Positions 5,812 to 63,314 of a stretch of 64,000 nt of DNA are shown piece after piece. The notes under the pieces were generated by a model. It had not been told where the DNA came from. It did no database searches and was given only the letters and a program-made list of their open reading frames with translations. Position numbers and translations under genes: made by a program. The DNA is taken from sequence record OR805294.1. One strand, written 5' to 3'. How positions within the stretch are numbered: the stretch's first letter is position 1; each line of letters starts with the position of its first letter.

Positions 5812-6141
5812 ATGAAAAATATAATTAAACATATTTTAGATTTTTATAACGGATTTTCCTATATAGTTCTATCAAACGTTATATTTCTTTTCAGTTGTAT
5901 AGTAACTACAGTATTTCTGTGTTATGTGTCTAAATTAAATAATGTACAAAATTTGGTATCCGACTCGGTTTATACAACTATAGTAGTTTTGTATTGTATT
6001 ATAGGTCTTCTATGTGGATTAAAAAGTTGTAAAATAATAGAATTGATAAAACCAGAGAAAAATATTGCAACTACTGTAGGTGTTATAACCGGCATCGCCG
6101 TAGTGTTAGTTGCTATGTTGGGATGGATATATGCGGCGTAA
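5812..6141 (+). CDS. membrane protein (about 3 TM segments)
   Basis: three hydrophobic stretches. Confidence 0.65.
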   Translation: MKNIIKHILDFYNGFSYIVLSNVIFLFSCIVTTVFLCYVSKLNNVQNLVSDSVYTTIVVLYCIIGLLCGLKSCKIIELIKPEKNIATTVGVITGIAVVLVAMLGWIYAA

Positions 6142-7558
6142 TAGAAATCTTTCATCTTCTCATAGATTGATATCAAAAGTAGCCGTTAAGATTAAAATTC
6201 CCCATATGATGAGCGGGAAATTAAATGGAGCATTTGATCACTATTTTAGTAAGAATATAATAGCAGAGGATGCTGCTATCTGTAGATGGGCAGGAGATAG
6301 CAAATATGCAGGAAGATCGTCGATATATTCTGACGATATACCCCGTCAATTAATACGCAACACTGCAGGAAATGTCTCAGGTTGCACATCTTACACTAAC
6401 AAAGTTATTATGAATTATAAAGAGGATGCCGGAATGACTCAAGTTAACAGAACCTACACACGTAATAGTAACGATATTGAGTTTTCTCTGGAAGAAGAAT
6501 TCTCTAATGTCTTTAATGAATCGCCTATAAGAAAAACGTGGGTAGCATTTATAGATTGTAACACAAAGGCAGTAGAAGAAGCATTTAAAACTTGCCTAAG
6601 TAAAGAATCGTTTGATATAATCTCCAAAAAATATACAAATATAACATCTTATTCGTCATCTGATGCAGAGCGAGATGCAGACGTTGCATCTGAGGAAATT
6701 TGGGTAATAGGAAACGAAAAAGCAGCTATTTCTAGAATTACAGATATTTACGATAGTGTACGGTTTATGGTAATTTCTGCAAATGATAGTTGTAATGTAG
6801 CTAGGTTTGTAGAAGAATTTGGAAAAGTATATGCAAATGCATATCCTAAAGTAAAAGAAGAAAAACCGGAAATTAATATTATTGTGGCTGATTCCCACGG
6901 TTATGATTTAGAGTCGTTTGACATGACTCCTCTGCAAAACATAGATGCCTTTATTGAAGAAAATTATAACGATGATTTTAAAGACACATCTGAATATATA
7001 GTAGAAAAAATTATTAGTTCTAGTAAAGGTATAACACTCCTTCATGGCGAACGAGGAACTGGTAAAACTAATTTCATCCGATACATTGCAAATAAAGCTA
7101 AAAAGAAGAAACTCATATATGTTCCTTCCGATATGGCTCCGGAGTTAGCCAGACCTCAGTTTGTCTCGTTTGTTATGAACCACAAAGATAGTGTGTTTAT
7201 AGTAGAAGACGCAGAAAATATTCTCCGTCCTCGGGAAGGCGGCGGCAGTTCGGCAGTGTCTAACCTTCTTAACATGAGTGACGGTATCCTAGGTGATGCT
7301 GTTCGGTGTCAGTTTATTTGTACGTTTAACTGTAAAATTTCAGAAATTGACAGTGCATTGACTCGTAAAGGTCGGTTAAATGCAGAGTATGAATTTAACA
7401 AATTAACAAAAGAAAAATCCCAAAATCTTTTAGACAAAAAATACGGAACAGGAACATATGTAGCAAAAGGCGAAATGACGCTAGCAGACATTTACAATAT
7501 GGATAATCCTGACTTTAAAGTCCAACTTAAGAAACAAAAAATTGGTTTCGGGAACTAA
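6110..7558 (+). CDS. BCS1-like AAA+ ATPase (start probably near 6206)
   Basis: Walker A LLHGERGTGKT, Walker B FIVEDAE, VSNLLNMSDG, TFN, IDSALTRKGR arginine finger. Confidence 0.9.
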   Translation: MLCWDGYMRRNRNLSSSHRLISKVAVKIKIPHMMSGKLNGAFDHYFSKNIIAEDAAICRWAGDSKYAGRSSIYSDDIPRQLIRNTAGNVSGCTSYTNKVIMNYKEDAGMTQVNRTYTRNSNDIEFSLEEEFSNVFNESPIRKTWVAFIDCNTKAVEEAFKTCLSKESFDIISKKYTNITSYSSSDAERDADVASEEIWVIGNEKAAISRITDIYDSVRFMVISANDSCNVARFVEEFGKVYANAYPKVKEEKPEINIIVADSHGYDLESFDMTPLQNIDAFIEENYNDDFKDTSEYIVEKIISSSKGITLLHGERGTGKTNFIRYIANKAKKKKLIYVPSDMAPELARPQFVSFVMNHKDSVFIVEDAENILRPREGGGSSAVSNLLNMSDGILGDAVRCQFICTFNCKISEIDSALTRKGRLNAEYEFNKLTKEKSQNLLDKKYGTGTYVAKGEMTLADIYNMDNPDFKVQLKKQKIGFGN

Positions 7559-7563: not shown

Positions 7564-7827
7564 ATGCGTAGATATTTCATTGTATATTTTTCACTGGTAT
7601 TCATATTAGCTATATCCGGAATTATATATGCGTTGACATATGGATTTATGTTTGCCGGAAAAGAAAACTCTCCAGGGTATTCTAATAGTAGGGATAATCT
7701 TATTAAAAATATGAATGAATTATTGGAACAACAAAAAGCACTAAATTTGGAAATAAAGGAATTAAATAAAGAAATTAATTCTACTAAAACTGAAATATCA
7801 TCTAAATTACAAAATGTAGACACCTAA
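7564..7827 (+). CDS. N-terminal TM anchor plus coiled-coil protein
   Basis: hydrophobic residues 4-30, heptad pattern after. Confidence 0.65.
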   Translation: MRRYFIVYFSLVFILAISGIIYALTYGFMFAGKENSPGYSNSRDNLIKNMNELLEQQKALNLEIKELNKEINSTKTEISSKLQNVDT

Positions 7828-7842
7828 TAGTAGTTTCTATAT

Positions 7843-7875
7843 AATAAAACAGGAGCATTAGGCTCCTGTTTTATT
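7843..7875. terminator. bidirectional terminator at convergent genes
   Basis: AATAAAACAGGAGC-attag-GCTCCTGTTTTATT, overlapping the stop of the minus-strand gene. Confidence 0.75.
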
Positions 7876-8610
7876 TTTTGAAATTTTAGTCATTATAGTA
7901 TTATATAAATCATATGCACGTTTGATTATGCGTTTGTATGCTCTGGGGTTTTCGTTTTTAAGAAACATAATATAATTTATGTGTGCATTTTCTATAAATG
8001 CATTTATAAATTCTTCTTTTGTTAAGACAGTTCCTTTTTTGTATAAAAAACTAAATTGATCTACAGTTTGTTCTAAAGCTTGACTTATTCTTGCATTTAT
8101 TTCGTATGATTGTCTATAATATGTATCTGAAGATGCCGGATCGTATCTTTTTATTTTTTCATTCTTAAACGGTTGTCCTTTATTTTTATCTAGTGCATGC
8201 CTTAACTCATGTACTATAGTTGAAACTACACTCTTGTTATTACTAAAAGAATTACCATAATAATGAGTATAAACATATATAGTATTAGATACTAAGTTGT
8301 ATTCTCCTTTCTTTGCACCGTGTTGTCCGGAAATGTCAAACACTACCTGTATATCTTTAAATTCATTGTATAGATCATCGAATATATCATCAGGAATTAT
8401 ATTTTTTAAAACAACAGTATAGGTACTTAACATTAATTGTACAGTCGGCCAATCGTAGTTTTTCAACAACAATTGATCTTCTATTTCTTCTCTGTGTTGC
8501 TTTAAATTGTTGAAATATGATATAGCGTTTGCTACACACATTTTTGCAATATTTTGAATAATCAGTTCTTCGTCTGAAGTTTCGATTAAATTAATTTCGT
8601 TTAGTCGCAC
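7858..8610 (-). CDS. HExxH zinc-metalloprotease-like protein, putative capsid-internal
   Basis: STIVHELRHALD ... YEINAR; N-terminus MRLNEINLIE. Confidence 0.75.
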   Translation of the reverse strand: MRLNEINLIETSDEELIIQNIAKMCVANAISYFNNLKQHREEIEDQLLLKNYDWPTVQLMLSTYTVVLKNIIPDDIFDDLYNEFKDIQVVFDISGQHGAKKGEYNLVSNTIYVYTHYYGNSFSNNKSVVSTIVHELRHALDKNKGQPFKNEKIKRYDPASSDTYYRQSYEINARISQALEQTVDQFSFLYKKGTVLTKEEFINAFIENAHINYIMFLKNENPRAYKRIIKRAYDLYNTIMTKISKNKTGA

Positions 8611-9280
8611 GATTTTCTGCCCTTATCTTTAATGTAACATACAATTCGTAACATCTAGATACTATTCGTTTCCATACTTTTGGATTTTCTTTCTTTAAGT
8701 ATGTAAGCTGATGACCTTTTGCGAATTTTTCTATATTATCTAGAAACCATTCTTTGGATGGTATTTCTTTTGAAGATCCCCAATACTGCAAAAATATAAC
8801 CTTAAGATCATTTAATAATTCGGCTATTCTTGCATTTATTTCGTATTTTTGATTTAAATATTCTTTATGTTTATCTGAATTGTTTGTATGTTTATATAAT
8901 AATGGATTACCCTTAGAACTATCTAATGCATGTTGTAATTCATGAACTAAGGTATTTGTGTATGTTATATCATTTTTATATGAATCTGGACCTATATCAA
9001 AAAGTGCTATGAGATTTTTGCCATCAGTTCTTTGAATAAAAGCACCGTTGTATTGTTCTGGATGCTCATTCGCATACGGACGTATTATTAAATCGGAAAT
9101 ATTATTTAAAACAGGATACTTATCGAAATATTCTTGTTTTATTAAATCTTTTAGTTTGTATGAATTGTATATTTTATTTTCTGCATTCTTTTCTATAACA
9201 AACCATATTATTTTTGCAATAGTAGATAATATTATACTTTCGCTTGCCTTTTCTGTTAGATTAAATTCTAAAATTTTCAT
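8591..9280 (-). CDS. HExxH zinc-metalloprotease-like protein, paralog of 7858..8610
   Basis: NTLVHELQHALD ... YEINAR ... KENPKVWKRI; N-terminus MKILEFNLTE. Confidence 0.75.
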   Translation of the reverse strand: MKILEFNLTEKASESIILSTIAKIIWFVIEKNAENKIYNSYKLKDLIKQEYFDKYPVLNNISDLIIRPYANEHPEQYNGAFIQRTDGKNLIALFDIGPDSYKNDITYTNTLVHELQHALDSSKGNPLLYKHTNNSDKHKEYLNQKYEINARIAELLNDLKVIFLQYWGSSKEIPSKEWFLDNIEKFAKGHQLTYLKKENPKVWKRIVSRCYELYVTLKIRAENRATKRN

Positions 9281-9286
9281 TATATC

Positions 9287-9481
9287 CTATCCGTTATGTT
9301 TCCAATACTGGATAGATTTTTCTTGTTTAGAAACCCAGTCTTTAGAAGGTTTTCCTTTACCCTCATAATATCTAAGGGGCTTCCCTGTCTTTTTAGAAAC
9401 AAGTGCCCATTTTCCATTTATATGTTTTAATTCTTCGTCTAATTCTGACGATTCTAGTATGCATATTTCGGAAAGTTTCAT
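9287..9481 (-). CDS. small basic putative capsid-internal protein
   Basis: N-terminus MKLSEICILE; AGGA RBS. Confidence 0.7.
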   Translation of the reverse strand: MKLSEICILESSELDEELKHINGKWALVSKKTGKPLRYYEGKGKPSKDWVSKQEKSIQYWKHNG

Positions 9482-9512
9482 AATCTTTAATCCTGTATTA
9501 TATGTATATGCT

Positions 9513-9538
9513 TATTTATCGCATTATATAACTAAATA
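9513..9538. promoter_or_regulatory. divergent T4-late-like promoter pair
   Basis: ATAAATA on minus (9513-9519) and CTAAATA on plus (9532-9538) between divergent genes; T4 late consensus is TATAAATA. Confidence 0.45.
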
Positions 9539-9566
9539 GTGTTATCTTGTAAAGGAGGAGTTTTCC

Positions 9567-10547
9567 ATGGGAAGACCTATTAAAAGCGATTGGTTTGGTG
9601 AAAGCGAAACGGGCCAACCTAAGTTAAGCATATATGCTAAGTTACCTGGTATGACTAATGCTGCCGAGGGTTTTATAGTAGCACAAAAAGGTACTCGTAA
9701 ATATAAAGTAAACGTTAACGACACTATAGGCGATGTCTTTCTAGTTAATTCTAAATTAGCTGATTTAAATGAAGGCGAAGGGGTTATATTCGTAGGCGAA
9801 GTAGATAGTGACATAACTGTTTCTAAAATACAACAATACGGATTAGTAGCAGTTAATTCCACTGGCGAAATTCAATTCGGCGGACAAACACAATGGGTAG
9901 TAGACGAAGAAACAGGATTACAACCTGATACTAGTTCTGTCCCGCAACCAAGTAATCAAACGTTGCTTGCAAATGCCAGTACTGCATTTAAGAAAGAAAA
10001 CGGAACATTATGGACTGGTTCGGGAATACCGGCATCAGGAATGTTAGTATCTAAAAATAATATAATTGAACTTGCATTGTCTGCACACTTGCGCGGTTCT
10101 GTTATTAACAGAAAAATAAACGACGACGGTTCGTATGATATATCTCTAACTTCTTCAACACAAGATTGGGCGTTTGACTATTGTGTAGGTATTGTATCGC
10201 CGGCAGTAACAGATATAACTACAGAATACGACGTTGTTCTTACTGCATATTGCAATTCAGAAGGTAAAGAACAAAACCCGGCTGTATTTACTTTAGCAAA
10301 AGAAGATACATATGTATGGAAAAATACAGTTCTAGACGGAGATATTACTGACAGTGCATCCGATCCTGATAATCGGTGTGTTCAAAATACTCTTAGATAT
10401 ACGTTCTTTAAAGATAATGTTGTGCCTCCAGTAGGTGAAGAAGATCCTATAGTAGGTACATTTATTATCAAATTAGAAGCAACCCATAAAACTAACTTTA
10501 ATACTGTTAGTGCAAAAATGATAGTTCGTGTAACAAAAGATTTTTAA
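9567..10547 (+). CDS. putative virion structural protein
   Basis: AGGAGGAG RBS, late-like promoter, MGRP...GFIVAQKGTRKYKV N-terminus, acidic beta-rich composition. Confidence 0.7.
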   Translation: MGRPIKSDWFGESETGQPKLSIYAKLPGMTNAAEGFIVAQKGTRKYKVNVNDTIGDVFLVNSKLADLNEGEGVIFVGEVDSDITVSKIQQYGLVAVNSTGEIQFGGQTQWVVDEETGLQPDTSSVPQPSNQTLLANASTAFKKENGTLWTGSGIPASGMLVSKNNIIELALSAHLRGSVINRKINDDGSYDISLTSSTQDWAFDYCVGIVSPAVTDITTEYDVVLTAYCNSEGKEQNPAVFTLAKEDTYVWKNTVLDGDITDSASDPDNRCVQNTLRYTFFKDNVVPPVGEEDPIVGTFIIKLEATHKTNFNTVSAKMIVRVTKDF

Positions 10548-14524: not shown

Positions 14525-14746
14525 CATATAAAAGTATGCGTATAATTTGCACATATAACGCAATAGCACAGCAACAAACAAAACGTAATAAAAAAATGTT
14601 GCAATAGCTTAAAAGTTTTAGTATAATAAGCACATAACAACGCAATACAGTTTACAAACAAAACGTAATAAAAAATGTTGCAATAGCTTAAAAGTTTTAG
14701 TATAATAAGCGTATAATGCAGCTTATATAACAAGTTAAAAACCCCT
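14525..14746. other. GA/TC-free island (222 nt) covering the tRNA-operon promoters
   Basis: no GA or TC by hand scan. Confidence 0.85.
14574..14710 (+). promoter_or_regulatory. tandemly duplicated sigma70 promoter (57-58 bp direct repeat) for the tRNA operon
   Basis: copies 14574-14631 and 14654-14710, each A-rich UP + TTGCAA-17-TATAAT. Confidence 0.85.
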
Positions 14747-14819
14747 CGGTAGCTCAGTTGGTTAGAGCGCGCGACTCATAATCGCTAGGTCACTGGTTCG
14801 AATCCAGTTCGAGGGACCA
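14743..14819 (+). tRNA. tRNA-CAU (Ile2/lysidine-type or elongator Met), copy 1
   Basis: full cloverleaf, anticodon arm CGCGA-CTCATAA-TCGCT, CCA end. Confidence 0.9.
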
Positions 14820-14841
14820 ATTTTAAGATGTTGTGCTTTTA

Positions 14842-14926
14842 GCCCGAGTGGTGAAATTGGTAGACACAGGAGACTTAAAATCTCCCGCTTCGCAGCGTAC
14901 CGGTTCGAGTCCGGTCTCGGGTACCA
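14842..14926 (+). tRNA. tRNA-Leu(UAA), copy 1
   Basis: cloverleaf with long variable arm, CCA. Confidence 0.95.
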
Positions 14927-14976
14927 AACAAAAGATATAAATACTTAACAAGATAGGAAACTATTCTAAAATTAAA

Positions 14977-15052
14977 TGGCTAGTAGCTCAGTTGGTAGAG
15001 CAAGTGACTGTTAATCATTGGGTCGTAGGTTCGAGTCCTACCTAGCCAGCCA
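14977..15052 (+). tRNA. tRNA-Asn(GUU)
   Basis: cloverleaf, U1-A72, G73, CCA. Confidence 0.95.
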
Positions 15053-15078
15053 ATTACACTTTGTTGTATATTCAATAT

Positions 15079-15154
<76 letters not shown>

Positions 15155-15223
15155 ATTTTAAATAACATTTGTATCTAAAGAGATACAATAGTCTAAATAA
15201 AATATTCATATAATGTTTCAAAC

Positions 15224-15300
15224 GGGACTTTAGCTCAGTTGGTTAGAGCGCGCGACTCATAATCGCTAGGTCACTGGTTCGAATCCAGTAAGTCCCACCA
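15224..15300 (+). tRNA. tRNA-CAU (Ile2/lysidine-type or elongator Met), copy 2
   Basis: same D, anticodon and T arms as copy 1; acceptor GGGACTT/AAGTCCC; CCA. Confidence 0.9.
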
Positions 15301-15350
15301 ATTTTTATATACAAATCAAACTATACTTAAACTATATAATGAATGAATAT

Positions 15351-15435
15351 GCCCGGTTGGTGAAATCGGTAGACACAGGAGACTTAAAATCTCCCGACGA
15401 AAGTCGTGCCAGTTCGAGTCTGGCACCGGGCACCA
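15351..15435 (+). tRNA. tRNA-Leu(UAA), copy 2
   Basis: cloverleaf with long variable arm, CCA. Confidence 0.95.
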
Positions 15436-15444
15436 AACTCCTAC

Positions 15445-15476
15445 AAAAGGAACATATTATAGTATGTTCCTTTTTT
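15445..15476 (+). terminator. terminator of the first tRNA operon
   Basis: AAAAGGAACATA/TATGTTCCTTTT plus T-run. Confidence 0.8.
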
Positions 15477-15661
15477 ATTATGATATTTTTATTATGAATG
15501 AAATAATGCATATATCTGCCAACACATACGTAATAGAATATCGCGTATTAAACAAGTTAGTAGTCACTATAAAAAATAATAGATCTTTTACATTATGGGT
15601 ACATTTTGATATCGGTACATTTTCTATGGCATGGAAATACAATGCAATATAGAATTAAAAA

Positions 15662-15823
15662 ATGAAATACATTATTAATTTACAATACTCAACAGAAGTA
15701 ATATATATGCCGTGTTTCAACATAATATCGTTATGCGATAATAGATCTGTTACTATCCTTTCTATTACTATGATATTTAAGATAAGATACTATTTGCATC
15801 CGATGTTCCGTTATATTCTATAA
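15662..15823 (+). pseudogene. truncated or single-unit member of the paralog family
   Basis: MKYIINLQYSTEVI start motif, stops after 53 aa. Confidence 0.45.
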
Positions 15824-16297
15824 TACATAATATTTTTATTGTAACAAATACCAGAAGTGCTTAGATAATATATAGCAATTCTGTTTATTATCGATATTGC
15901 GGTATACTTAGTATTTCTTATTAACCGTATTACATAGAATAAAGAATGGAAAAAATTTTAACTATTTCACATAAAACATTAATATGTGAACTGTCGTTAT
16001 TAAACTGGTCGAAATCCATAGTTTGTGCATATTCTGGCGAAATAATATGGTATGTTCGGTTGCATAAGAAATGTTATGTAGTACAGCTAAGATGATAATG
16101 AACTGTATTTTTTCCTATTCGTACTATTTAGAACGCATCGTATGTCATGCAAAAATCTACAAAGGGTTTGTAGTCAGTAAAAATACTTTTTGTGAGAAAT
16201 CCGTAATAGCTTTATACTTAATAAATAGTGGTAGTTATTTTCATAAATGTTATGTCGATCATTACTTAATTGTATAGATATATTTTAATAAAAATAG

Positions 16298-16326
16298 TTG
16301 ACCGAACAAACAAAACAGTATATAAT
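16298..16326 (+). promoter_or_regulatory. sigma70 promoter for tRNA-Arg
   Basis: TTGACC-17-TATAAT. Confidence 0.75.
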
Positions 16327-16377
16327 GTTACGCATATAAAGCATTATTACAAAGCTATCATTAGTTGCACAAGATAT

Positions 16378-16454
16378 GCGCTCGTAGCTCAGCTGGATAG
16401 AGCATCCGCCTTCTAAGCGGATGGTCGGGGGTTCGAATCCCTCCGGGCGCGCCA
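16378..16454 (+). tRNA. tRNA-Arg(UCU)
   Basis: cloverleaf, CCA. Confidence 0.95.
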
Positions 16455-16722
16455 ATTTTAAAGAGTGTTGTGTTATGCAAACAATAAGATTTGACATAAG
16501 ACTTCTTCGTTATAGTATGAAACAAGGTTTCTGTTGCATAGGTAAAGATATATTTGAAGTGTGCAGAAAAACTCGGATCAGTCCAGGTCAGCTAAACTTA
16601 CGAAAAAATTATATAGGACGAGTATTAATCGGAATTGATTCGAACTACAATCTGCACAATACCTGTTTAGTAGGCTGGACTCGCTATAAAAATATTATAG
16701 TATAAAAATTTATATTAATAAT

Positions 16723-16965
16723 ATGAATAGATGCAAAGAACATCTACAATACAGAACAATCAAAAAGCATACATTAACTTGTAGGAAATGCAAAGAGTTA
16801 TCGTTACAAATAAAATTATTTTGGCTTCAACAACAAGCATTCAGTATTAGAACCGATACTAGCGGAATATACATATTCGATATTAAATATAATTCTATTT
16901 ACGTATACTCTGTAGCTTGGTATAATACAGAATTATACGGTAAAGGGAAAATAATTTTAGAATAA
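16723..16965 (+). CDS. hypothetical protein
   Basis: ORF; CxxC. Confidence 0.5.
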   Translation: MNRCKEHLQYRTIKKHTLTCRKCKELSLQIKLFWLQQQAFSIRTDTSGIYIFDIKYNSIYVYSVAWYNTELYGKGKIILE

Positions 16966-16993
16966 ACATGTATATATAAGAGTACCTCAAATA

Positions 16994-17326
16994 ATGAATA
17001 ATTATTCTAATGATACAGATATTCTAAAATGGATAAAGCGTAACAATAGAAAAAATGCACGTCTAATTTCATATATAGACGGAATATATAATATTGTTTA
17101 TTTCGATGGCGGAAAAGCAAGAGTTGGCATAGTAAAAGACAATATGCACTGCAGATACGGAATACATAGTCGTGGATCTATGTATTCGAAAGATATAATG
17201 AGCCTGTGGCAATCTAGTACAGGTTCGTGTTCGCCCGATGATGTAAAGATTATGCAAGATTATCTAGACGATAAATGCATACTTCCGGAATTTGATTTTT
17301 CTCAGATTAAAAATTTAAAATGGTAA
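16994..17326 (+). CDS. hypothetical protein within the tRNA region
   Basis: 110-aa ORF with balanced composition. Confidence 0.7.
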   Translation: MNNYSNDTDILKWIKRNNRKNARLISYIDGIYNIVYFDGGKARVGIVKDNMHCRYGIHSRGSMYSKDIMSLWQSSTGSCSPDDVKIMQDYLDDKCILPEFDFSQIKNLKW

Positions 17327-17349
17327 ATAATATAACAATATAGTTTTAT

Positions 17350-17426
17350 CGCAGGGTATGCAAGAGGTCTAAGCAGAAAGGCTCATAACCTTTTTATCGT
17401 GGGTTCGAATCCCACCCCTGCAACCA
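17350..17426 (+). tRNA. initiator-type tRNA-fMet(CAU), atypical
   Basis: C1:A72 mismatch, CAT anticodon, CCA; only two G-C pairs next to the anticodon loop. Confidence 0.8.
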
Positions 17427-17435
17427 GTTTTATAT

Positions 17436-17512
17436 CTAGGCATAGCTCAAGTAGGTAGAGCACTTGCTTTGGGAGCAAGAGGTTGGGGATTCGAGGTCTC
17501 CTGCCTAGACCA
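17436..17512 (+). tRNA. tRNA-Pro(UGG)
   Basis: C1-G72, A73, CCA. Confidence 0.9.
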
Positions 17513-17521
17513 ATTTACTAT

Positions 17522-17594
17522 GCAGTCCTAGCTCAATTGGTAGAGCACTGTCCTTCCAAGTCAGATGTTACGGGTTCGAGTCCCGTGGGCTGCT
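17522..17594 (+). tRNA. tRNA-Gly(UCC) lacking an encoded CCA
   Basis: cloverleaf, U73, followed by CAA; U30:U40 mismatch. Confidence 0.8.
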
Positions 17595-18323
17595 CAATAT
17601 TCTAATATAATCGATGATTCGTGTAGTGGATAAATATGGAAGTATAGTTATACCATCTAATATAACGGTGCTGGAAATACAGGCATACACAACAGAGTTA
17701 GTGTATGTAAGAAAATCTCATTGTTTATGTTTATACATTCCTAATATAGGAAATTATGCTTTATGGTTTTTAGACAGATAGGATAAAAATATAAATCGAT
17801 ATTGTTCTGTTTAAGGAACCAACATTAAATGGCAGGTTGCATATTTAGACTCGATTTGTCTATTTTTCGTGAAAATGTATATAGTATTTCTAGGTTGTCT
17901 TATACAAAATCTATATGTGTTTCAATAAAAACTAAACCGACAAGCAATAGAAGACAATTAGAAATATATGTTGTAGATAAAACAACTGATTTTTTAGTTG
18001 CATGCAAATATTTTTAGCTTATCTATTTTGACTTGCCTTTAAAATAAATAACCATTATATATTTGATATAACAACTATTCTAAATAGAAATAAAACCATA
18101 AATACACATAATAACGGTGTGGATTTATGGAAAACATATTTAGGATATCTATTAATGCTAACGAAGGTATTATACGAATATCCCCTACTTACTTTTTTAA
18201 TGGTGTTTTTTATTCAAAGCATTTGAATATTTTTATAATAGATCCCGACGGATATCTAATAAGAAAAATATATACTTGTAGTACATTCTTATGATGATTT
18301 CTTTTAAATATACAAAATAGCAT

Positions 18324-18352
18324 TTGACACAAGTATAATTATTTCGTATAAT
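18324..18352 (+). promoter_or_regulatory. consensus sigma70 promoter
   Basis: TTGACA-17-TATAAT. Confidence 0.85.
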
Positions 18353-18383
18353 AAGTGTATAAAATAACAAAAGAGAATTTTAA

Positions 18384-18743
18384 ATGATTTCCAAAATTCA
18401 AATTGTATACGGAATATATCTTCCTACTGCTGATGCAAAAATTATATACGAAGACTCGGAATACGAATCTAATAAAATAAATAAAAATATTAGATTATTT
18501 GCAAATGATGCATATTTAGAAGATAAGATTTTAGAAAATAAGGAATTCGAAGATAATCCCTATGTTCCGCACTTTTATGGTATTTTTTGTAAAGAATTCG
18601 ATAATGACCAAAGTGCATACTTATATAATGTTCCCAAATCTTTTATAGATGAATATAATAATGTAGCTCCAGCTATTTTGGCTAGACTCGGTTATTTAGA
18701 TAGAGTTGCAGGAAAACAACATTGTAGAATAATCTACGAATAG
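18384..18743 (+). CDS. hypothetical protein
   Basis: ORF directly after consensus promoter. Confidence 0.75.
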   Translation: MISKIQIVYGIYLPTADAKIIYEDSEYESNKINKNIRLFANDAYLEDKILENKEFEDNPYVPHFYGIFCKEFDNDQSAYLYNVPKSFIDEYNNVAPAILARLGYLDRVAGKQHCRIIYE

Positions 18744-18757
18744 AATTAACTAGTTTT

Positions 18758-18847
18758 GGAGAGGTGATAGAGTCTGGTTTATTATACTAGTCTTGAAAAC
18801 TAGCGGATCGAAAGGTCCCGTGGGTTCGAATCCCACCCTCTCCGCCA
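18758..18847 (+). tRNA. tRNA-Ser(UGA)
   Basis: long variable arm, G73, CCA. Confidence 0.9.
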
Positions 18848-18852
18848 AATAT

Positions 18853-18942
18853 AGATACTTGACCGAGTGGCTTAAGGTGCTTCCCTGCTAAGGAAGTGAG
18901 TTTGAAAAAGCTCCGTAGGTTCGAATCCTACAGTATCTGCCA
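18853..18942 (+). tRNA. tRNA-Ser(GCU)
   Basis: long variable arm, G73, CCA; terminator at 18949-18976 follows. Confidence 0.9.
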
Positions 18943-20689: not shown

Positions 20690-20908
20690 ATGATAGATTA
20701 CATCTTTAAATTAAGTTCCTATTGTTTAATTTTTATAGATTCATCACGCCATTATGGTGTACACTACGATCTGGCAGAATATTTTTCAGACGGTTCTATA
20801 TGGTATAAATGGTCTTATGAGACCACTTCGCACAACGATACTCAGTATAATAAAGGAAAATACACAAAAAGTTTTATATACTTAATGGAAGGAAAATATT
20901 CAGCATGA
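20690..20908 (+). CDS. short member related to the paralog family
   Basis: MIDYIFKLSSYCLI, cf. MIDWVFKLSASCYEI at 39933. Confidence 0.5.
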   Translation: MIDYIFKLSSYCLIFIDSSRHYGVHYDLAEYFSDGSIWYKWSYETTSHNDTQYNKGKYTKSFIYLMEGKYSA

Positions 20909-21423
20909 AAGGGTATGATTTAATTAAAGAATATTATGGTACCCGGGTTGCTAAACGTTCCGGGATTCCGTTAATGAACCATATAGATGAAGGTCTAAAA
21001 ATTTTAGATACAATAAATTCTTCATACGAAGTAAAAGAAGCATTTTGTTTACATCCTTTGCTCCAAAATAACGAAGAATTTGAAAATAACTATGATTTAG
21101 TAGTAAGCACAGGCGGCCTGGTAACAAAAAGTATTCTTCTTGCAATGGAATATAGACACAAAGCAAATACATATTTGTGTAAAAAAGAAACAGATCATTG
21201 GACAGTTGAATATGCATCTAAAAAAATAGGTCATATTATTCATCCTGTAAAAGAAATGCTAATAGCAGATAAGGTTCAAAATTTCAAAGATTTTAAAATA
21301 TATCATAAAGACACCCACAAAAGATCTCATCAGTTATCTAAATATTTTAAAAATTGGCTAACAATCTTAGAAATATCTGACGTCGACGCTAAAGATTTAG
21401 AACAAGTGTGTTATAAAGATTAA
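20905..21423 (+). CDS. divergent HD-domain (Mesh1/SpoT hydrolase-like) protein
   Basis: KRSGIPLMNH ... AFCLHP ... LIADKVQN mirrors RKSGEPYIxH ... AALLHD ... KLADRLHN. Confidence 0.55.
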   Translation: MKGYDLIKEYYGTRVAKRSGIPLMNHIDEGLKILDTINSSYEVKEAFCLHPLLQNNEEFENNYDLVVSTGGLVTKSILLAMEYRHKANTYLCKKETDHWTVEYASKKIGHIIHPVKEMLIADKVQNFKDFKIYHKDTHKRSHQLSKYFKNWLTILEISDVDAKDLEQVCYKD

Positions 21424-41991: not shown

Positions 41992-42034
41992 CGGAATTGC
42001 GATTTAGGTTTTGGAATTCTAAATCGCAATTCCG
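41992..42034. terminator. perfect 16-bp inverted repeat
   Basis: CGGAATTGCGATTTAG-11nt-CTAAATCGCAATTCCG. Confidence 0.65.
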
Positions 42035-42254
42035 GTTTCCAAATTCAATTTTAGGCACAAACTCGGATCCGCATTTGCATTTTGCATTTACATTTTGTGT
42101 TCTGAGTGTATATGCAAAATGCAATCGCGCATGTTGTCGATGCATTGGCTAATCTTTTATTTTTGATAGTTTAGAAAAGATTAAGAACAGAAACTATCTG
42201 TAAATTAATAAAAATAACATTTACATTACATACACATATGCATATACTATATAC

Positions 42255-42532
42255 AAGTTATGCGCTGTTGCATACGTAAATACCTCCTATGTTGTTTAGA
42301 TATGTCGATTCTGGTATAACCAGATAGACCTAAGGATGATGCTAGTGATTCCTTAGTATTGTATATTCTAGCTGAGTATAAAGAGTAAGGGGCTTTATAC
42401 AAATAACAATTCCTTAGGCAAGATATACCGCTCCGTTGTGCTGACGAGCATAATTTGCCCAGATACAGAGCACGTGACTGGTCTGAGGAGCATTTATATC
42501 AGAAAGGCAGACTTATGTTTGCCTTTCTTTTT
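42255..42532 (+). ncRNA. candidate ncRNA B (~280 nt)
   Basis: TTTACA(42220)-17-TATACT promoter, nested helices, intrinsic terminator 42501-42532, no ORF. Confidence 0.7.
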
Positions 42533-42550
42533 GAGCAGATATTCTCTTAT

Positions 42551-42629
42551 TCACTTCCTTATTCATTTCTTTATTCATCTCTATTTCGTTTGTCACTTCC
42601 TTATTCATTTCTTTATTCATCTCTATTTC
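42551..42629. repeat. pyrimidine-rich 37-bp direct repeat x2
   Basis: TCACTTCCTTATTCATTTCTTTATTCATCTCTATTTC at 42551 and 42593. Confidence 0.85.
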
Positions 42630-42639
42630 ATTTGTTATT

Positions 42640-42757
42640 GCAAATAAGACTAATTCTTATTTGCGTTTGTAATTTCATTTGTTATTGCAAATAAGACTAA
42701 TTCGTATTTGCATTTGCAACGAAAAAGAATATGCAAATAATAACTAATCTTATTTGC
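42640..42757. promoter_or_regulatory. cluster of three 25-bp palindromic boxes (Fur-box-like)
   Basis: GCAAATAAGACTAATTCTTATTTGC at 42640, variants at 42687 and 42733. Confidence 0.75.
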
Positions 42758-42931
42758 ATTTGCACTGCCTAGTATATGGATTGGTAGCATACTTGGAAAT
42801 GGATAGTAAATAAGTAGTTGATTTGTTTATAAATTATACTTCTACACCATACAGATTGACCTTGCTATATATAGCTCGTGCGCGCGTATACAAGATGGTA
42901 AAAAATAATTTAAAAATATTTTAAAAAATGC

Positions 42932-43055
42932 TTGACTTTCCATTACTACGACCTTAAAGTGCGAACTGTAGACGCAGTGTGTAGAGCGCTACATAGTAAG
43001 CAACGCAGAAAGTAAACAAAAAATGCTTGACGCAATGCAAACTAGGCTCTACACT
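42932..43055 (+). promoter_or_regulatory. tandem strong sigma70 promoters
   Basis: A/T UP element + TTGACT-17-TAAAGT and TTGACG-17-TACACT. Confidence 0.8.
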
Positions 43056-43138
43056 GTATACAAGCTTAAGGGGTAGGTGCCCCGAAAGTGTAGTAAGTAA
43101 ACAACATAATCCTTCCATCAGCTACAGAGGTATACAAC

Positions 43139-43843
43139 ATGTCCGTACATATCACTCGTCAACGTACCGACAAACAGCACGTCCTGGCACTGGCAATCAA
43201 CGGTGTGGTCATCGGCCAGACTATGGCTACCTACACCACCCCGAGCAAGCGCACCTGGTCGGCGACCGCCGAAGTCGAACTGGCAGACGGCACCGTCGTA
43301 CAGTTCGAGCAGAAAGAAGTGTTCAGCGCGATCCGCATCACCCGCGAAATCGAGCAGGCGCTCGACGGCAAGGAACTGGCGGCCAAGTACACCCCGGAAC
43401 CGAAAGTTCCCGGGCAGAAGGGTCCGAAACCGCTCACCGACGAAAGCCGGCTCAGCAACGCGATCGCGATCGTCAAAGCGGCCATCACCCACACCGGCTT
43501 CGACGAAGCTACCCTGGTGTTCGACGGGGTCGACAAGGCCAACTTCGAGCAGAACAGCACCTCCGTCGGCAACAAGCTGCGTCGCCTGGGCTTCGTCTTC
43601 GAACTCGGCGCCGGCAAGGCGAACAGCGGCAAGGGCTTCCTGATCAACCGCAAAGCGCAGGCCGAGGCAGAAGCTGCCGAACGCAAGGCCAAGCGCGACG
43701 CCGAGAAGAAGGAACGCGAAGAAAAAGCGGCGGCTGCCAAGCGCGAAGCTGACGAACGCAAGGCCAAGCGCGAAGCCGAACGCGCCGAAAAGGTCGCTGA
43801 AAAGAACGCAGCGATCGCCGGGGCAGCGCAGGAAAGCAAGTAA
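43139..43843 (+). CDS. GC-rich early protein with K/A/E/R coiled-coil tail; paralog of 61964..62422
   Basis: AGAGGT RBS; all 11 Ile codons are ATC; shared NGVVxGQ...xFSAIRI domain; terminator at 43859-43886. Confidence 0.9.
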   Translation: MSVHITRQRTDKQHVLALAINGVVIGQTMATYTTPSKRTWSATAEVELADGTVVQFEQKEVFSAIRITREIEQALDGKELAAKYTPEPKVPGQKGPKPLTDESRLSNAIAIVKAAITHTGFDEATLVFDGVDKANFEQNSTSVGNKLRRLGFVFELGAGKANSGKGFLINRKAQAEAEAAERKAKRDAEKKEREEKAAAAKREADERKAKREAERAEKVAEKNAAIAGAAQESK

Positions 43844-44770
43844 TTGCCCAACTGCGCCAGAAGGGGAGCAATAGCTCCCCTTTCTTCATGACCACACAAT
43901 CTATATACTACTATGTCTTTAACTATATTTTCTATATCAGCTAATTTGTATACAATAACTTGGTATTCTGCGCAACTGACACAATGGTGTTATATAGACA
44001 TAATAACACGCGACGCTAATATTTTTATAACCTATCCATTTTATAATAACATATTTGTATCTAAAATTAGTTCTAATACAATAATTGAAGAAAAAATTGA
44101 AGAAAAATATGAACACTATATTAGAGATATGTCGTGGAATAAGAAATGACTATATAACAGTCAATAATTTTACATATGACTACTATCTAGAGGTAAACAC
44201 ACCTGCGTTTTCTTTAATGATAATTATTCCGACAGTTCCTATATTAGACAATACTTGCATTACTTTTATAAAAAAGTATTAATATGAATATATTCTTTAT
44301 ATCAAACGGTCTATCTAATATAATATATCATAGAGAGTATGATACACATATGATAGATATTGAGATTAATAATTCTACTGTTATTTGGCTTACATATTCT
44401 TTCAGTGTTGCTAAGGTATCATTTAGATATATTACCTGATTCGTTTTCTTATTGTATGAGTTGCAATTGCAAATTACTCTTATTTGTAATTACATATAAA
44501 CAATCAGTTGCTATTAAAAGTATTTGCTGTTAATATACTATATAACAGTGCAATTGATATTTTAAAATACAGTGTGCAATACATCTTACATGTATTAAAA
44601 TTTGTGTGTTACTTGTTTTGCATTAATGATTAATATACCTCTCTTACAGTACAAAACTCATACTATATACAATTTGTTCGGGCGATCGTTCTCGAAAAGT
44701 ATACAAGTGAGAGATAGCAATCTAATTATACTTGTTAGTTTCTATATAGAAGGTTCTAAATATAGAAAAT

Positions 44771-49892: not shown

Positions 49893-50098
49893 AGACATTT
49901 TTGAAGATGCTCGCATATTGCGTGCTTGGGACATCCATTGGCATTGCCATCAGCCAATGGTTCATCTTCGTCCTAGAGATGAGGCTTGGCGCCGTGCTCT
50001 GGTACATCGTTGGCCTTGGTCCTGTGCTGCTTGTGTTTTGCATTTTGGGCAGCTTCCTTCAATGGCTGATTCATAAGAACTTGGAGAAAAAGCAATGA
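49889..50098 (+). CDS. small membrane protein
   Basis: ATGA-coupled start at 49889; two TM segments. Confidence 0.7.
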   Translation: MKTFLKMLAYCVLGTSIGIAISQWFIFVLEMRLGAVLWYIVGLGPVLLVFCILGSFLQWLIHKNLEKKQ

Positions 50099-50169
50099 CC
50101 GACCACGCAGAGCTGCGGAGGCTGGCTAAAGAAGTGATCCGAATTGAACGAAATGAGGATGCAGCATGA
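50095..50169 (+). pseudogene. 24-aa remnant MTDHAELRRLAKEV...
   Basis: ATGA-coupled at both ends; start typical of Ead/Ea22-like genes. Confidence 0.5.
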
Positions 50170-50681
50170 GCATTGACTGGAGCAAGGCACCAGAGGGCGC
50201 GACTCATTGGGAGCCAACAGGACTTGAGTTCAATGAAAGATGGATGAAGAAAGAAGGGAATGGCTGGTTCTTTTGGGGGCTAGGTGCAGAATGGAAATAC
50301 GGGGGTGATGTATCCGCAGAGCGTGAGGCGACATTCGAGGCTAGACCGCAAGAGGCCTGGGACGGCCAGGGTCTACCGCCGGTTGGCCTGATGGTGGAGT
50401 GGAAGGCAGGCCTTGATCACGACTGGCAGCGCGTAACCGTGCTTGCCTACGCCAATGGCGACGCGTGGTTTCAGCCCGAGGATGGCCCGTCTTTCATCGT
50501 CGGCAACCCGGCAAACTTCAGGCGTATCCGCACCCCCGAGCAGTTGGCCGCCGAGGAGCGGGAAAAGGCGATTAATCAGATGATTTCTGATGCTGGATAC
50601 GTAGATCCGAAGATTGGCACATTTGTGGCTATGCGCAATCTCTACGACGCCGGCTACCGGCGCCGGGAGGAAGGGAAATGA
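50166..50681 (+). CDS. Pseudomonas phage hypothetical protein (IDWSKAPEGATH family)
   Basis: MSIDWSKAPEGATHW ... WDGQGLPPVG ... FRRIRTPEQLAAEEREKA. Confidence 0.8.
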   Translation: MSIDWSKAPEGATHWEPTGLEFNERWMKKEGNGWFFWGLGAEWKYGGDVSAEREATFEARPQEAWDGQGLPPVGLMVEWKAGLDHDWQRVTVLAYANGDAWFQPEDGPSFIVGNPANFRRIRTPEQLAAEEREKAINQMISDAGYVDPKIGTFVAMRNLYDAGYRRREEGK

Positions 50682-50944
50682 GCAGACTGACAGCTGAGCA
50701 AGCCCGTGACATAGCGCGAGCGAAAGACGATGTCGATACTATCCTCAACGACATCGCCAAAACAGCCGCAGAAGGAAAGTACGTGTACACTACCCGCGCC
50801 TATGGGTTCGGCACAGGCGGCGGACGGCGCAGCGACGCGATCCTCAAAGTGTTGCGTAGCCTCGGCTACGACTGTGCGGTGCATGCTGAGGGACGCCAGT
50901 CTGTCGACCTGTGGCTTGAAGTGAAATGGGGAGACAAGCCATGA
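50678..50944 (+). CDS. hypothetical protein
   Basis: coupled GC-rich ORF. Confidence 0.75.
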   Translation: MSRLTAEQARDIARAKDDVDTILNDIAKTAAEGKYVYTTRAYGFGTGGGRRSDAILKVLRSLGYDCAVHAEGRQSVDLWLEVKWGDKP

Positions 50945-51360
50945 CTAACAACCCCGGAGATTCAAAAATGATCGTAGAAAACGCCAAGCAAGCCGCCGAA
51001 GACTTCAAAACTTCCATGGCTAAGATTTTTCCGAATTACATCGCCGGTGCGTCGGTTTCCGATAACCTTGGTCCGGCGATGACAATTTCGTTTGCGAATG
51101 TCGGTTGCGCTTCCGAAGCCCCTAACAGCATTCTGATAAATGCGAGCGGTTACATGCGCTTTATGATGCATTTGTGTGACAATTGCGGGAATGTATTGCC
51201 AGAAGGTTCGCCGGTAGAAATTGAGCTGCTAATGTGGTCTATCCCCTATCGTTCGGAAGTAATCAAGTTCCGCAAGATCAAGGGCAAGACACCAGCCGAA
51301 GCTATGCAAAAGCTAGTCAAGTGGTTTGAAAAAAACGCCGAAGCTATCCGGGGTCTGTAA
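50941..51360 (+). CDS. hypothetical protein
   Basis: ATGA-coupled; C-terminal FRKIKGKTPAEAMQKLVKWF. Confidence 0.75.
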   Translation: MTNNPGDSKMIVENAKQAAEDFKTSMAKIFPNYIAGASVSDNLGPAMTISFANVGCASEAPNSILINASGYMRFMMHLCDNCGNVLPEGSPVEIELLMWSIPYRSEVIKFRKIKGKTPAEAMQKLVKWFEKNAEAIRGL

Positions 51361-51384
51361 TGGTCTCCACGTAGGACACGCAGA

Positions 51385-51786
51385 ATGAACATTGTGTTGG
51401 ACAAATTGCTGTTTGGCGGTTTCATCGACCAGCACCGCAATGAACTTGCCCAGCAACAACTGAATCGGTTGTTTGCCAAGTACGGTGAGCCGAAGATTGG
51501 TATCACACGGGCATGCTTTCTATCTAAGCATTACGTCCTGAAGTTCCCGATTAATGACAGGGGTGAGCGGTGCAACGATTGGGAAGGTAGCTGTTCCGGC
51601 AGCTACTTGGCACGCGGACGCTGGCTAGAAATCGGAGGCTTCATTTGCGTCATGCAAGAGCGTTTGGTTGAAGTGGATTGGAAGAACAACACCCATGCAA
51701 ACTTTCCTGATTGGGTAGGCAGCATAGATTGTGGTCAAGTCGGCTACGATAAACATGGCGTTCTGAAAGCGTATGACTTCGGGTGA
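51385..51786 (+). CDS. miniature protein-kinase-like fold protein
   Basis: G..R..F, VLKFP, NDWE, D..Q.G, terminal AYDFG. Confidence 0.55.
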   Translation: MNIVLDKLLFGGFIDQHRNELAQQQLNRLFAKYGEPKIGITRACFLSKHYVLKFPINDRGERCNDWEGSCSGSYLARGRWLEIGGFICVMQERLVEVDWKNNTHANFPDWVGSIDCGQVGYDKHGVLKAYDFG

Positions 51787-51789
51787 AGC

Positions 51790-52074
51790 ATGACCATCAA
51801 TTTGTTTGTCGTCAACATAAAGAACGAACCTATCCCAACCGACCACAAGTCGATACTCCGCTATCTTGGCCTTAGCCTGCACACGCAAGGCCGTCGCGTA
51901 TCTGCCAAATTCAGCAGCGGTAAGTTGAAGCTGAACAACTACAACATCGAATTTTTTCACATGGCGGACGAGAACGATGAACTTCGCCGCCTTTGCTCCT
52001 GCGCTAAGCAATATAACCTCAGCATGACACTGCGCAGAATGATTGACGCAGTCCTTAAAAGAGACAAGCCATGA
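51790..52074 (+). CDS. hypothetical protein
   Basis: coupled ORF. Confidence 0.65.
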   Translation: MTINLFVVNIKNEPIPTDHKSILRYLGLSLHTQGRRVSAKFSSGKLKLNNYNIEFFHMADENDELRRLCSCAKQYNLSMTLRRMIDAVLKRDKP

Positions 52075-52259
52075 CCGACATTAAAAAGCTGAAGGAGTTA
52101 GCGGAACGGGCTACTCCTGGTCCCTGGTCTGCGTCTTGGAAGGAAGGCGATGACCATTTGGGGCGAATTGCTTACTTCGTGTCAACTGGTCAATACAACA
52201 TCACAAAAGAAACAGTCTTCGACATAGTGAATGTGGTTCCCGAAAATGTGTGCTCCTGA
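52071..52259 (+). CDS. Ead/Ea22-like protein, short or truncated
   Basis: LKELAERATPGPW. Confidence 0.65.
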   Translation: MTDIKKLKELAERATPGPWSASWKEGDDHLGRIAYFVSTGQYNITKETVFDIVNVVPENVCS

Positions 52260-52401
52260 CGCATCTACAGCATGGGAGGCTGCCTTTGTGTTTTTCACAC
52301 TCGCAGGAGGCCCATTGCTTTGCTGTATTGCAATTCTTCTAGCGCCGGAGCCATGCCGACAGACCAAACACACCCAGCGATAAGCGGGAAGAGAGGAATC
52401 C

Positions 52402-52506
52402 ATGCCAACCCTTTTTGAGTTCGCTGCAATGTGGGGAATTCTGCTTCTGACGATGTTTTTGCCGATCCGTTTGAATCGTCGCCCTATTCAACCGCAAGAC
52501 GCCTGA
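52402..52506 (+). CDS. 34-aa membrane peptide
   Basis: GAGAGGA RBS; MPTLFEFAAMWGILLLTMFLPIRL. Confidence 0.6.
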   Translation: MPTLFEFAAMWGILLLTMFLPIRLNRRPIQPQDA

Positions 52507-52522
52507 CAGGCAGGAGAACAGA

Positions 52523-52810: not shown

Positions 52811-52863
52811 TTGAAGTAAAGTGAAAGAAATATCATTATGATCTACTAGAAGGAGCAGCATAC

Positions 52864-53858: not shown

Positions 53859-53885
53859 TAATTCTCTCTACACAGGAGAACGGCA

Positions 53886-62422: not shown

Positions 62423-62437
62423 GCGCTGCTAACACAG

Positions 62438-63312: not shown

Positions 63313-63314
63313 GA

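Follow-up and report, generated by a model that had tools for sequence, protein, structure and literature searches.

A minus-strand operon of PA5oct-type Pseudomonas phages encoding candidate internal head proteins, two of them putative zincin proteases

Proteins delivered from the phage head and the three-gene operon

The proteins that a phage carries in its head come into play ahead of any phage transcription and are thus the first line of counter-defence. In phage T4, the internal proteins Ip1-3 are co-injected with the DNA and block the GmrSD type IV restriction enzymes (PMC12373910, PMC3012670), and the head-delivered enzyme Alt carries an N-terminal propeptide that is cut by gp21 (PMC9026906). 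These small inhibitors and this one enzyme are the only such proteins characterised in T4. Capsid-targeting leaders of the T4 type and the diversity of the internal proteins are well established (PMC3012670, PMC9026906, PMC12373910), and in the leader of IPIII residues 8 and 10 govern processing and residues 4 and 7 targeting (PMC9026906). P1 Dar and the inner-body and ejection proteins of phiKZ and SPN3US are likewise head-internal, processed by a prohead protease and delivered against defence or to start infection (PMC12810830, PMC9026906, PMC13282480). Here, we analyse a minus-strand operon of three genes at positions 7858-9481 of a 64-kb window of sequence record OR805294.1 (the window is the whole stretch of DNA analysed, and bare positions are its coordinates), the products of which would, by their sequences, be internal proteins of the T4 type that bear an enzymatic cargo. 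We consider it reasonably probable that this operon is a late cassette of three internal head proteins, in which two packaged and injected zincin proteases are accompanied by a basic partner.

The open reading frame (ORF) list and the raw sequence give three co-directional genes, which together with the elements at their two ends are as follows.

9287-9481, minus strand: gene 1, 64 residues, ATG start, leader MKLSEICILE, homolog of PA5oct gp382
8591-9280, minus strand: gene 2, 229 residues, ATG start, leader MKILEFNLTE encoded at 9251-9280, homolog of PA5oct gp381
8944-8930 and 8842-8840, minus strand: HELQH motif and invariant Glu147 of gene 2, whose product is zincin-like
7858-8610, minus strand: gene 3, 250 residues, GTG start, leader MRLNEINLIE encoded at 8581-8610, homolog of PA5oct gp380
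8211-8197 and 8103-8101, minus strand: HELRH motif and Glu170 of gene 3, paralog of gene 2
9513-9520, minus strand: late-promoter-type box GATAAATA, 31 nucleotides before the ATG of gene 1
7843-7875, both strands: terminator-like hairpin with a 14-bp stem and the stop codon of the operon in its loop

The three N-termini had been proposed in an initial annotation of this DNA and are present on the minus strand as claimed. Its description of the genes as the only minus-strand operon is essentially right: the matching stretches of PA5oct contain two other minus-strand coding sequences, both isolated short ORFs. A purine-rich stretch resembling a Shine-Dalgarno sequence lies upstream of each gene, and gene 3 starts 20 nucleotides inside gene 2. 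Over its 2.2 kb, the operon region matches Pseudomonas phages Deifobo and Ettore with 100% identity and nine further records of the PA5oct group with 98-99%, PA5oct itself being at about 98%. This group, Wroclawvirus, consists of jumbo myoviruses of P. aeruginosa of about 287-288 kb. The PA5oct annotation has the same three coding sequences (gp382, gp381 and gp380) and uses the same GTG start for gene 3, a choice that is backed by the alignment to the paralog and to more than 100 relatives; the PAC2 annotation begins this gene at a downstream ATG and thereby misses the leader. Genes 2 and 3 are paralogs (BLASTP E=3e-20, 35% identity over 132 residues and about 30% over the full length) that have in common the motifs HEL(Q/R)HALD and YEINAR, so that the earlier description of tandem HExxH paralogs with a downstream glutamate in YEINAR stands in full. 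The product of gene 1 is unrelated to the paralogs.

The proteins resemble T4 Ip1-3 in several ways: a short leader ending in (I/L)-x-E is common to unrelated proteins, the genes lie outside the head module, the phage has a gp21-type protease, two proteins of the set are annotated as detected in virions, and the 64- and 229-residue proteins are basic after removal of the leader. Without its first ten residues the gene 1 protein has about 6.3 kDa and an isoelectric point of 9.6, and the 229-residue protein without residues 1-10 has an isoelectric point of 9.2; in charge, the predicted mature products of genes 1 and 2 are thus like the T4 internal proteins. They are unlike them in that the leader pattern is all they share in sequence, and even there the acidic/hydrophobic core is shifted by one residue, in that two of the cargos are putative enzymes of about 26-28 kDa instead of small inhibitors, and in that the host is a Pseudomonas, the phage a 288-kb jumbo phage, and cleavage and injection are deduced for this phage by analogy. 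The proteins of P1, phiKZ and SPN3US are more distant, being unrelated in sequence and having different targeting signals and a different cleavage motif.

A probable capsid-targeting leader on unrelated proteins

(I/L)-x-E stands at residues 8-10 of all three N-termini and recurs at their residues 3-5. The T4 record has MKTYQEFIAE as the start of ipII and ipIII; in it, ipI starts with MKTFKEF and has ITE at residues 17-19, gp24 starts with MAKINELLRE, gp22 with MLKEQLIAE and gp21 with MNEPQLLIE, and gp23 has FLTE at residues 62-65; these leaders, as read from the record, agree with the published propeptide lengths (PMC9026906). The assignment of the N-termini to the T4 type of capsid-targeting leader is borne out by this comparison and by the retention of the leader across more than 100 relatives and on non-homologous neighbours. 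The position of the motif, which was said to be exactly 8-10, is so in all three operon genes and is not universal: among the 107 aligned members of the HExxH family to which genes 2 and 3 belong, 83 have a site whose last residue is number 8, 9 or 10.

The bare motif [IL]xE at 8-10 is found in about 1.1% of start candidates (12 of 1,017 in the window and 49 of 4,319 in PA5oct). A more complete form of the leader, M-[KR]-x-x-[EDQN]-hydrophobic-(0-1)-hydrophobic-x-E, matches seven of the 4,319 PA5oct start candidates, with 1.05±1.0 expected when residues 2-12 are shuffled, and from the internal rate about 0.12 matches are expected among the approximately 450 real PA5oct N-termini. The seven are gp380, gp381, gp382, gp150, gp238, gp271 and gp422, and four of them are detected by mass spectrometry (MS) in virions as compared with a baseline of 20% (binomial p about 0.04). 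The pattern had been written after the sequences were seen, and it was therefore tested on 35 independent metagenomic loci round distant homologs of the HExxH proteins (544 kb), where it gave 31 matches (2.25±1.4 in shuffled sequences). Chance resemblance of the three N-termini is rejected by these two comparisons.

Nineteen of the 31 matches fall on genes without HExxH, nearly all of which adjoin a family gene and are unrelated to it by BLASTP. At locus L007, four consecutive leader genes encode two small proteins, an ADP-ribosyltransferase (ART) of the ART-PolyVal family and an HExxH protein, and comparable runs are found at L005, L013, L014, L025/L026/L028 and L032. The leader-bearing neighbours include a family of 115-135 residues that recurs beside the protease gene and a 460-residue protein homologous to the PA5oct virion protein gp205. 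As the same leader stands on neighbours unrelated to the protease, it is expected to be, and on this evidence is, a portable address or processing tag rather than an element of the protease fold. The L007 ART-PolyVal (L007:8665-10759), which begins MKLTELLLE and lies directly upstream of the family member, would be an Alt-like packaged enzyme, and a Fe/Mn superoxide dismutase at L005:7667-8230, beginning MNIRDTITLLE, possibly bears a leader as well. Likeness to T4 Alt lies in the same leader on an ART that adjoins a family member; the catalytic domain of the operon proteins is a zincin and that of Alt an ART, and Alt is also processed at its C-terminus.

Leader-type N-termini are also found on other proteins of PA5oct (coordinates in MK797984).

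82921-83142: gp150, MKINDIITE, a 73-residue virion protein encoded between the portal and protease genes
157529-157843: gp238, MKIKDILVE, virion protein
179881-180252, minus strand: gp271, MKIKEIILE, with a start 15 nucleotides inside the annotated one; a lone minus-strand gene with a GATAAATA box
130473-131921: gp205, MKLFEVFTLYE, virion protein
156341-157528: gp237, MFLKDVKITE

Most of these five are detected by MS, none has a Pfam family, and loci L004, L008 and L009 belong with them. Taken together, these N-termini point to some 8-10 proteins of PA5oct that may be targeted to the head. The remaining match to the pattern, a 172-residue gp422 homolog in the window (20905-21423, plus strand, MKGYDLIKE), is encoded among early plus-strand genes, lacks MS detection and is possibly a chance match.

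PA5oct has a head system that matches such a leader; the genes for it are located beyond the 64-kb window, in genomes with 98-100% identity to the window. The protease gp152 matches Peptidase_S77 (5e-24) and is 37% identical to T4 gp21, with the GVSSRG and GELxHP blocks; gp154 matches Gp23 (1e-96), and its FLVE42 resembles the FLTE65 cleavage site of T4; the scaffold protein gp153 starts with MTVKFEHILNE. The capsid protein matches 2,571 records of T4-superfamily phages. Virion evidence comes from the PA5oct GenBank record, in which the label 'structural protein, ESI-MS/MS' is given to gp380 and gp381 (PMC7318152). The claim that the operon proteins are packaged has some support for the two paralogs and none from MS for the 64-residue protein. 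The same MS list includes obvious non-structural enzymes, so that virion detection alone is soft evidence.

The presence of these enzymes on the list also speaks for a different explanation, according to which the N-terminal motif is a propeptide of the zymogen type or a product of AT-rich initiation bias and the MS signal comes from contaminating cytoplasmic protein. Residue E10 hardly varies across the family and might conceivably belong to the fold, and starts of the type 'MK...' are common among AT-rich phages. Against it, the leader occurs on BLASTP-unrelated neighbours without HExxH and in contigs of higher GC; residues 1-10 are modelled poorly and are followed by a confident helix from residue 12 (see below); position P3 is L, I or V in 94 of 94 sites, as in the specificity of gp21-type proteases; and the operon genes have a late-type promoter, like the virion genes. 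We therefore give this explanation little credence.

The small protein is the best conserved of the three. The whole operon recurs on a 9.6-kb metagenomic contig of 40% GC (L127:5155-6741, equal to L128:5822-7408) as a unit that is inverted relative to its flanks and consists of an ATAAATA box, genes of 59, 226 and 246 residues and a hairpin at the stop codon. Identities to the window proteins are 71% for the core of the small protein, LKH(I/V)NGKWALVSKKTGKPLRYY...QYWKH, 30% for the 226-residue protein and 50% for the 246-residue one, which aligns with gene 3 over the full length, leader included. In the L127 small protein the leader is four residues shorter: the 8-10 site is deleted, and what survives is L-x-E at 3-5 together with an L-D-E immediately ahead of the core. 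As the 8-10 site is lost and L-D-E retained, the true cut of the small protein may follow E16 (E12 in the L127 ortholog). A neighbour on the opposite strand in L127 encodes a Band_7/SPFH protein in the place of the virion protein that stands divergent from the operon in the window. The gene 1 product has no Pfam family, and a search of a word index for homologs returned none; look-alike clusters of viral 77-residue proteins are present in the ESM Atlas.

A family of HExxH proteins with a predicted zincin-like fold

An exhaustive profile search over 1.8 billion representatives (E<=1e-3) found 119 relatives of the HExxH proteins, mostly metagenomic and mostly of 210-290 residues, with a few long multi-domain proteins of 504-1060 residues. 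HExxH is present in 119 of 119 matches, most of which start with leaders such as MRLQELFLVETTEEDRAI, and the relatives in IMG/VR are often on very large contigs (100-518 kb). In an alignment of 107 sequences, H113, E114, H117 and E147 are invariant, and M1, E10, D120, Y141, N149, A150, R151 and R209 are conserved in at least 90%. A hydrophobic-x-E site ends at residues 6-12 in 94 of these sequences, with a peak at 9-10; across the 94 sites, P3 is L in 62, I in 26 and V in 6, and P1' is T in 60, S in 11, D in 9 and A in 5. Several of the sequences without a site resemble mis-called starts. A search of the word index with the 229-residue protein recovered only the protein itself, and a PHROGs search gave no meaningful match.

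The AlphaFold2 (AF2) model of the 229-residue protein built on the 107-sequence alignment has a mean predicted local distance difference test score (pLDDT) of 87 and a predicted template modelling score of 0.87, whereas the model from a 2-sequence alignment (pLDDT 47) is unusable. Residues 1-10 are of low confidence (mean pLDDT 58) and precede a high-confidence helix (12-31), strands at 39-41, 61-66, 79-83 and 89-93, a helix that carries HExxH (104-122), one that carries the Glu (145-170) and, at the C-terminus, a helical bundle. In the model E147, 30 residues after H117 and at the beginning of helix 145-170, is the candidate third metal ligand, and D120 is nearly invariant too.

Comparisons with known families gave weak matches with one recurring theme. 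By sequence, these are IrrE (3dte, E=0.007), WLM and a neutral metalloprotease, and, below the Pfam cutoffs, M91, DUF6782, SprT-like, M90 and M76. The window proteins never reach a Pfam gathering cutoff (best E 0.02-0.14), and among the 107 members the best Pfam match has an E of 2.5e-5 (DUF6782), no single family being matched by more than 10 of them; one member weakly matches MPTase-PolyVal. By structure, Foldseek against the AlphaFold database (AFDB) returned ImmA/IrrE, SprT-like and 'peptidase MA-like' proteins (probability 0.8-0.98), and against the PDB no match with E<0.1. In the ESM Atlas, M78 and SprT clusters have a template modelling score (TM) of 0.40 and three uncharacterised viral clusters one of 0.57-0.70. 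Structural alignment with VIA-align gave matches with Z of 3.4-5.1 to CapP (7t5t, 5.1), Spartan (6mdw, 4.6), PprI (8slm, 4.2), lethal factor and BlaR1; in its wide mode the C-terminal helical bundle alone matched unrelated helical proteins, and these matches were disregarded. Because zincins are the sole recurring theme and the Pfam matches remain below the cutoffs, the family is, as far as sequence and model allow, a divergent zincin with a gluzincin-like signature that forms a distinct family without a name. The earlier proposal of zinc proteases is thus supported in part by the invariant HExxH and downstream Glu (107 of 107) and by the zincin-like model, and is weakened by poor fold matches and the lack of a Pfam family.

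The best weak sequence and fold matches, ImmA/IrrE/CapP (M78) and SprT, are like the modelled protein in having the HExxH helix after a small sheet and have a third ligand about 27-30 residues downstream, for which E147 is the candidate in the family. Unlike these zincins, the family has the leader and a four-helix C-terminal extension and lacks a partner repressor gene or a helix-turn-helix domain. Zincins of the SprT-like and ArdC-like types have been noted in jumbo phages and polyvalent proteins (Iyer et al. 2017, 2021); they are predicted in 1-3 variable copies in group 2.2 jumbo phages, with cleavage of host proteins as the suggested role, and polyvalent proteins are thought to be injected (PMC7824862, PMC5512222). 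The operon proteins differ from the latter, which are giant multi-domain proteins, in being stand-alone, leader-tagged, single-domain proteins of 229 and 250 residues. The accessible parts of these two papers (PMC7824862, PMC5512222) contain no link of jumbo-phage or polyvalent zincins to a leader of the T4 type.

An HExxH domain need not be a peptidase, and the conserved motif might serve another metal chemistry or mere binding, as in a stoichiometric inhibitor of defence like Ip1-3. Consistent with this, an HExxH-domain oxygenase (8s5f) is among the best-ranked PDB fold matches, no Pfam peptidase model is matched at its cutoff, and the characterised Ips of T4 are all inhibitors and not enzymes (PMC12373910). 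However, the catalytic Glu, both His and the downstream Glu are invariant in 107 of 107 members, as would be expected if the domain were an active gluzincin and not a scaffold for binding, and the recurring weak matches (M78, SprT, M91, M90, M76, WLM, CapP and lethal factor) are all zincin peptidases. A function other than proteolysis is accordingly regarded as improbable to a marked degree.

Whether the proteins act in the next host or already in the particle bears on their function as well. They could be packaged via the leader and work during assembly as maturation or scaffold-clearing peptidases, or be components of the core, and not be effectors. Much proteolysis takes place in the heads of jumbo phages, for group 1 jumbo phages a conserved zincin has been suggested to be a maturation enzyme (PMC7824862), the leader-bearing gp150 is located inside the head-gene module, and detection in virions fits an assembly role as well as ejection. 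The operon, in contrast, lies far from the head module in a region of early and accessory genes. The family is patchy, duplicated and fast-evolving (orthologs are 30-50% identical), its genes stand beside those of further accessory enzymes with the leader, for instance the ART, and cultured relatives outside Wroclawvirus lack a detectable homolog: tblastn with the window protein and the consensus-like P0024 against 50,697 cultured phage records gave no match outside 11 Wroclawvirus genomes. Being patchy, duplicated, fast-evolving and clustered with an ART is a signature of conflict cargo and not of core assembly factors, and an assembly role is rated as unlikely.

Late-type promoter, proposed mechanism and genomic setting

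The box upstream of the operon had been called late-like, a view that is confirmed by the PA5oct virion genes. In a de novo count of 7-mers in the 90 nucleotides upstream of 93 MS-detected PA5oct genes and three others, GATAAAT precedes 23 of 96 starts (1.6 expected, about 14-fold) and ATAAATA 27 of 96 (2.0 expected), and these are the two clear top words. The operon box at 9513-9520 reads GCGATAAATAAG and is nearly identical to the box that precedes the tail-sheath gene. The ATAAATA box of the operon is hence, from motif counts, the predicted late-promoter motif of this phage, and the PA5oct motif is one base off the T4 late TATAAATA. Only two copies of GATAAATA are present in the 64-kb window, as compared with 11±3 expected from shuffles, which suggests counterselection of the late-promoter word in this early-gene region. 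The second copy (17629-17636, plus strand) is found where a small plus-strand ORF begins, downstream of the tRNA-Gly gene. A scan with the sigma-70 consensus found promoter-like sites at the level of shuffled sequence.

At the other end of the operon, the hairpin at 7843-7875 has folding free energies of -19.1 and -20.2 kcal/mol (z -7.3 and -6.0). It is a putative terminator-like element for both directions, placed where the genes 7564-7827 (plus strand) and 7858-8610 (minus strand) converge; a scan with a simple terminator consensus missed it. RNA-seq was available as undirected Logan contigs from four libraries, in which strand, timing and 5' end are not resolvable. One continuous contig of low depth spans approximately 7,760-10,460, that is, the operon and the divergent virion gene, with a boundary at about 7,740-7,760 and flanks that are 10-500-fold deeper. 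This low depth fits the weak transcription published for the structural-gene regions of PA5oct (PMC7318152).

In the mechanism that we propose, each protein would bear a capsid-targeting and processing leader of the form M-K/R-x-x-E-hydrophobic...(L/I)-x-E, by which it would be drawn into the prohead's scaffolding core in the manner of T4 Ip1-3, Alt and gp24, and the gp21-type serine protease gp152 would remove this leader after the Glu. The larger two are predicted to be paralogous single-domain zincin (HExxH plus Glu) metallopeptidases of an unnamed, mostly jumbo-phage family, and the small protein their highly conserved basic partner. The mature proteins would stay in the DNA-filled head, a presence in the virion that MS supports for the two proteases, and would most likely be expelled with the DNA into the next host, where the proteases would cut specific host proteins, for example defence or regulatory factors, before phage gene expression. 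The phage thus probably carries enzymes in its head, and these may be delivered to the next host. ImmA, IrrE/PprI and CapP make single specific cuts in repressors or regulators, and since these relatives do so, the most economical guess for the target, by analogy, would be a defined regulator of the host or a prophage or a defence protein.

Several points weigh against the reading of the operon as a cassette of injected head proteins. We infer the targeting to the prohead core, the cut that gp152 would make behind the Glu, the stay in the filled head, the ejection and the zinc-dependent proteolysis of host proteins. The 64-residue protein (gp382) is not among the MS-detected proteins of PA5oct, and the MS list also has RNR, ThyA, ClpP, FtsH and ligase, which makes contamination possible. 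Positions 4 and 7 of the three leaders are N/N, L/N and S/C, so that the targeting residues Tyr4 and Phe7 of T4 are not matched; this mismatch lowers the membership of the leaders in the T4 class as sequences, with the mechanism still possible because the partner in the scaffold is also a different one. As said above, the leader pattern was composed post hoc. Matches to known zincin folds are weak (Foldseek E>0.01, VIA-align Z 4-5.5, TM about 0.4). Co-occurrence of the family with an S77 protease is seen in the PA5oct group; a scan of IMG/VR for S77 with a gp21/gp152 alignment and narrow patterns gave no overlap with the family contigs among the 80 loci listed and is uninformative. The RNA-seq block of the operon is of low depth and undirected, so that DNA carry-over is possible.

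In a broader reading, which is put forward tentatively and with less confidence than the reading of the operon as a cassette of injected head proteins, the leader would be a readable address tag across T4-superfamily and jumbo phages, far outside the T-evens, that marks interchangeable cassettes of injected enzymes, and the HExxH family would be injected site-specific proteases with a small basic partner or keeper. The cargo would comprise zincins, ADP-ribosyltransferases and perhaps others, and host immune or regulatory proteins would be cut in the first seconds of infection. If the proposed function is true, proteolysis joins the known functions of injected phage proteins, a simple sequence rule predicts the ejected proteome of a jumbo phage from its genome alone, the operon supplies candidate host-range factors for PA5oct-type phages, which are studied for therapy of P. 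aeruginosa infections, and the leader offers a packaging tag of natural origin with which a Pseudomonas phage could be engineered to deliver cargo. The papers on PA5oct and MIJ3 list the operon genes only as structural or hypothetical, and no description of the leader in the PA5oct group, of its attachment to a zincin or of the three-gene cassette was found in the literature.

The window is of about 30% GC and holds nearly exclusively small plus-strand genes. Divergent from the operon and starting from the same 85-bp intergenic region is the gene of a 326-residue gp383 homolog (9567-10547, plus strand), an MS-detected virion protein without a Pfam family that is called a surface or adhesion protein in the annotation of one genome; a variant of the late box, ACTAAATA, lies upstream of it. 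On the other side, an AAA-type ATPase is encoded at 6110-7558 (plus strand; Pfam AAA, 4e-9), for which the start in PA5oct is 21 nucleotides downstream of the TTG start of the longest ORF. Between this gene and the operon lies an 87-residue gene (7564-7827, plus strand) with a hydrophobic N-terminal stretch and weak PHROG matches to Rz-like spanin and 'hol-like' families.

Further away, the cluster of twelve tRNA genes of these phages occupies 14743-18942 (plus strand), in which the pair tRNA-Met(CAT) and tRNA-Leu(TAA) is present twice, flanking tRNA-Asn and tRNA-Thr, with a third tRNA-Met further on. Islands of 43-52% GC are located at 42000-44000, 50000-54000 and 62000-64000, the remainder of the window having 26-33% GC. 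The counterparts of these islands in PA5oct are portions of its long terminal repeat region, and their ORFs are without a Pfam family; one of these ORFs, at 43139-43843, is a homolog of the MS-detected gp38.

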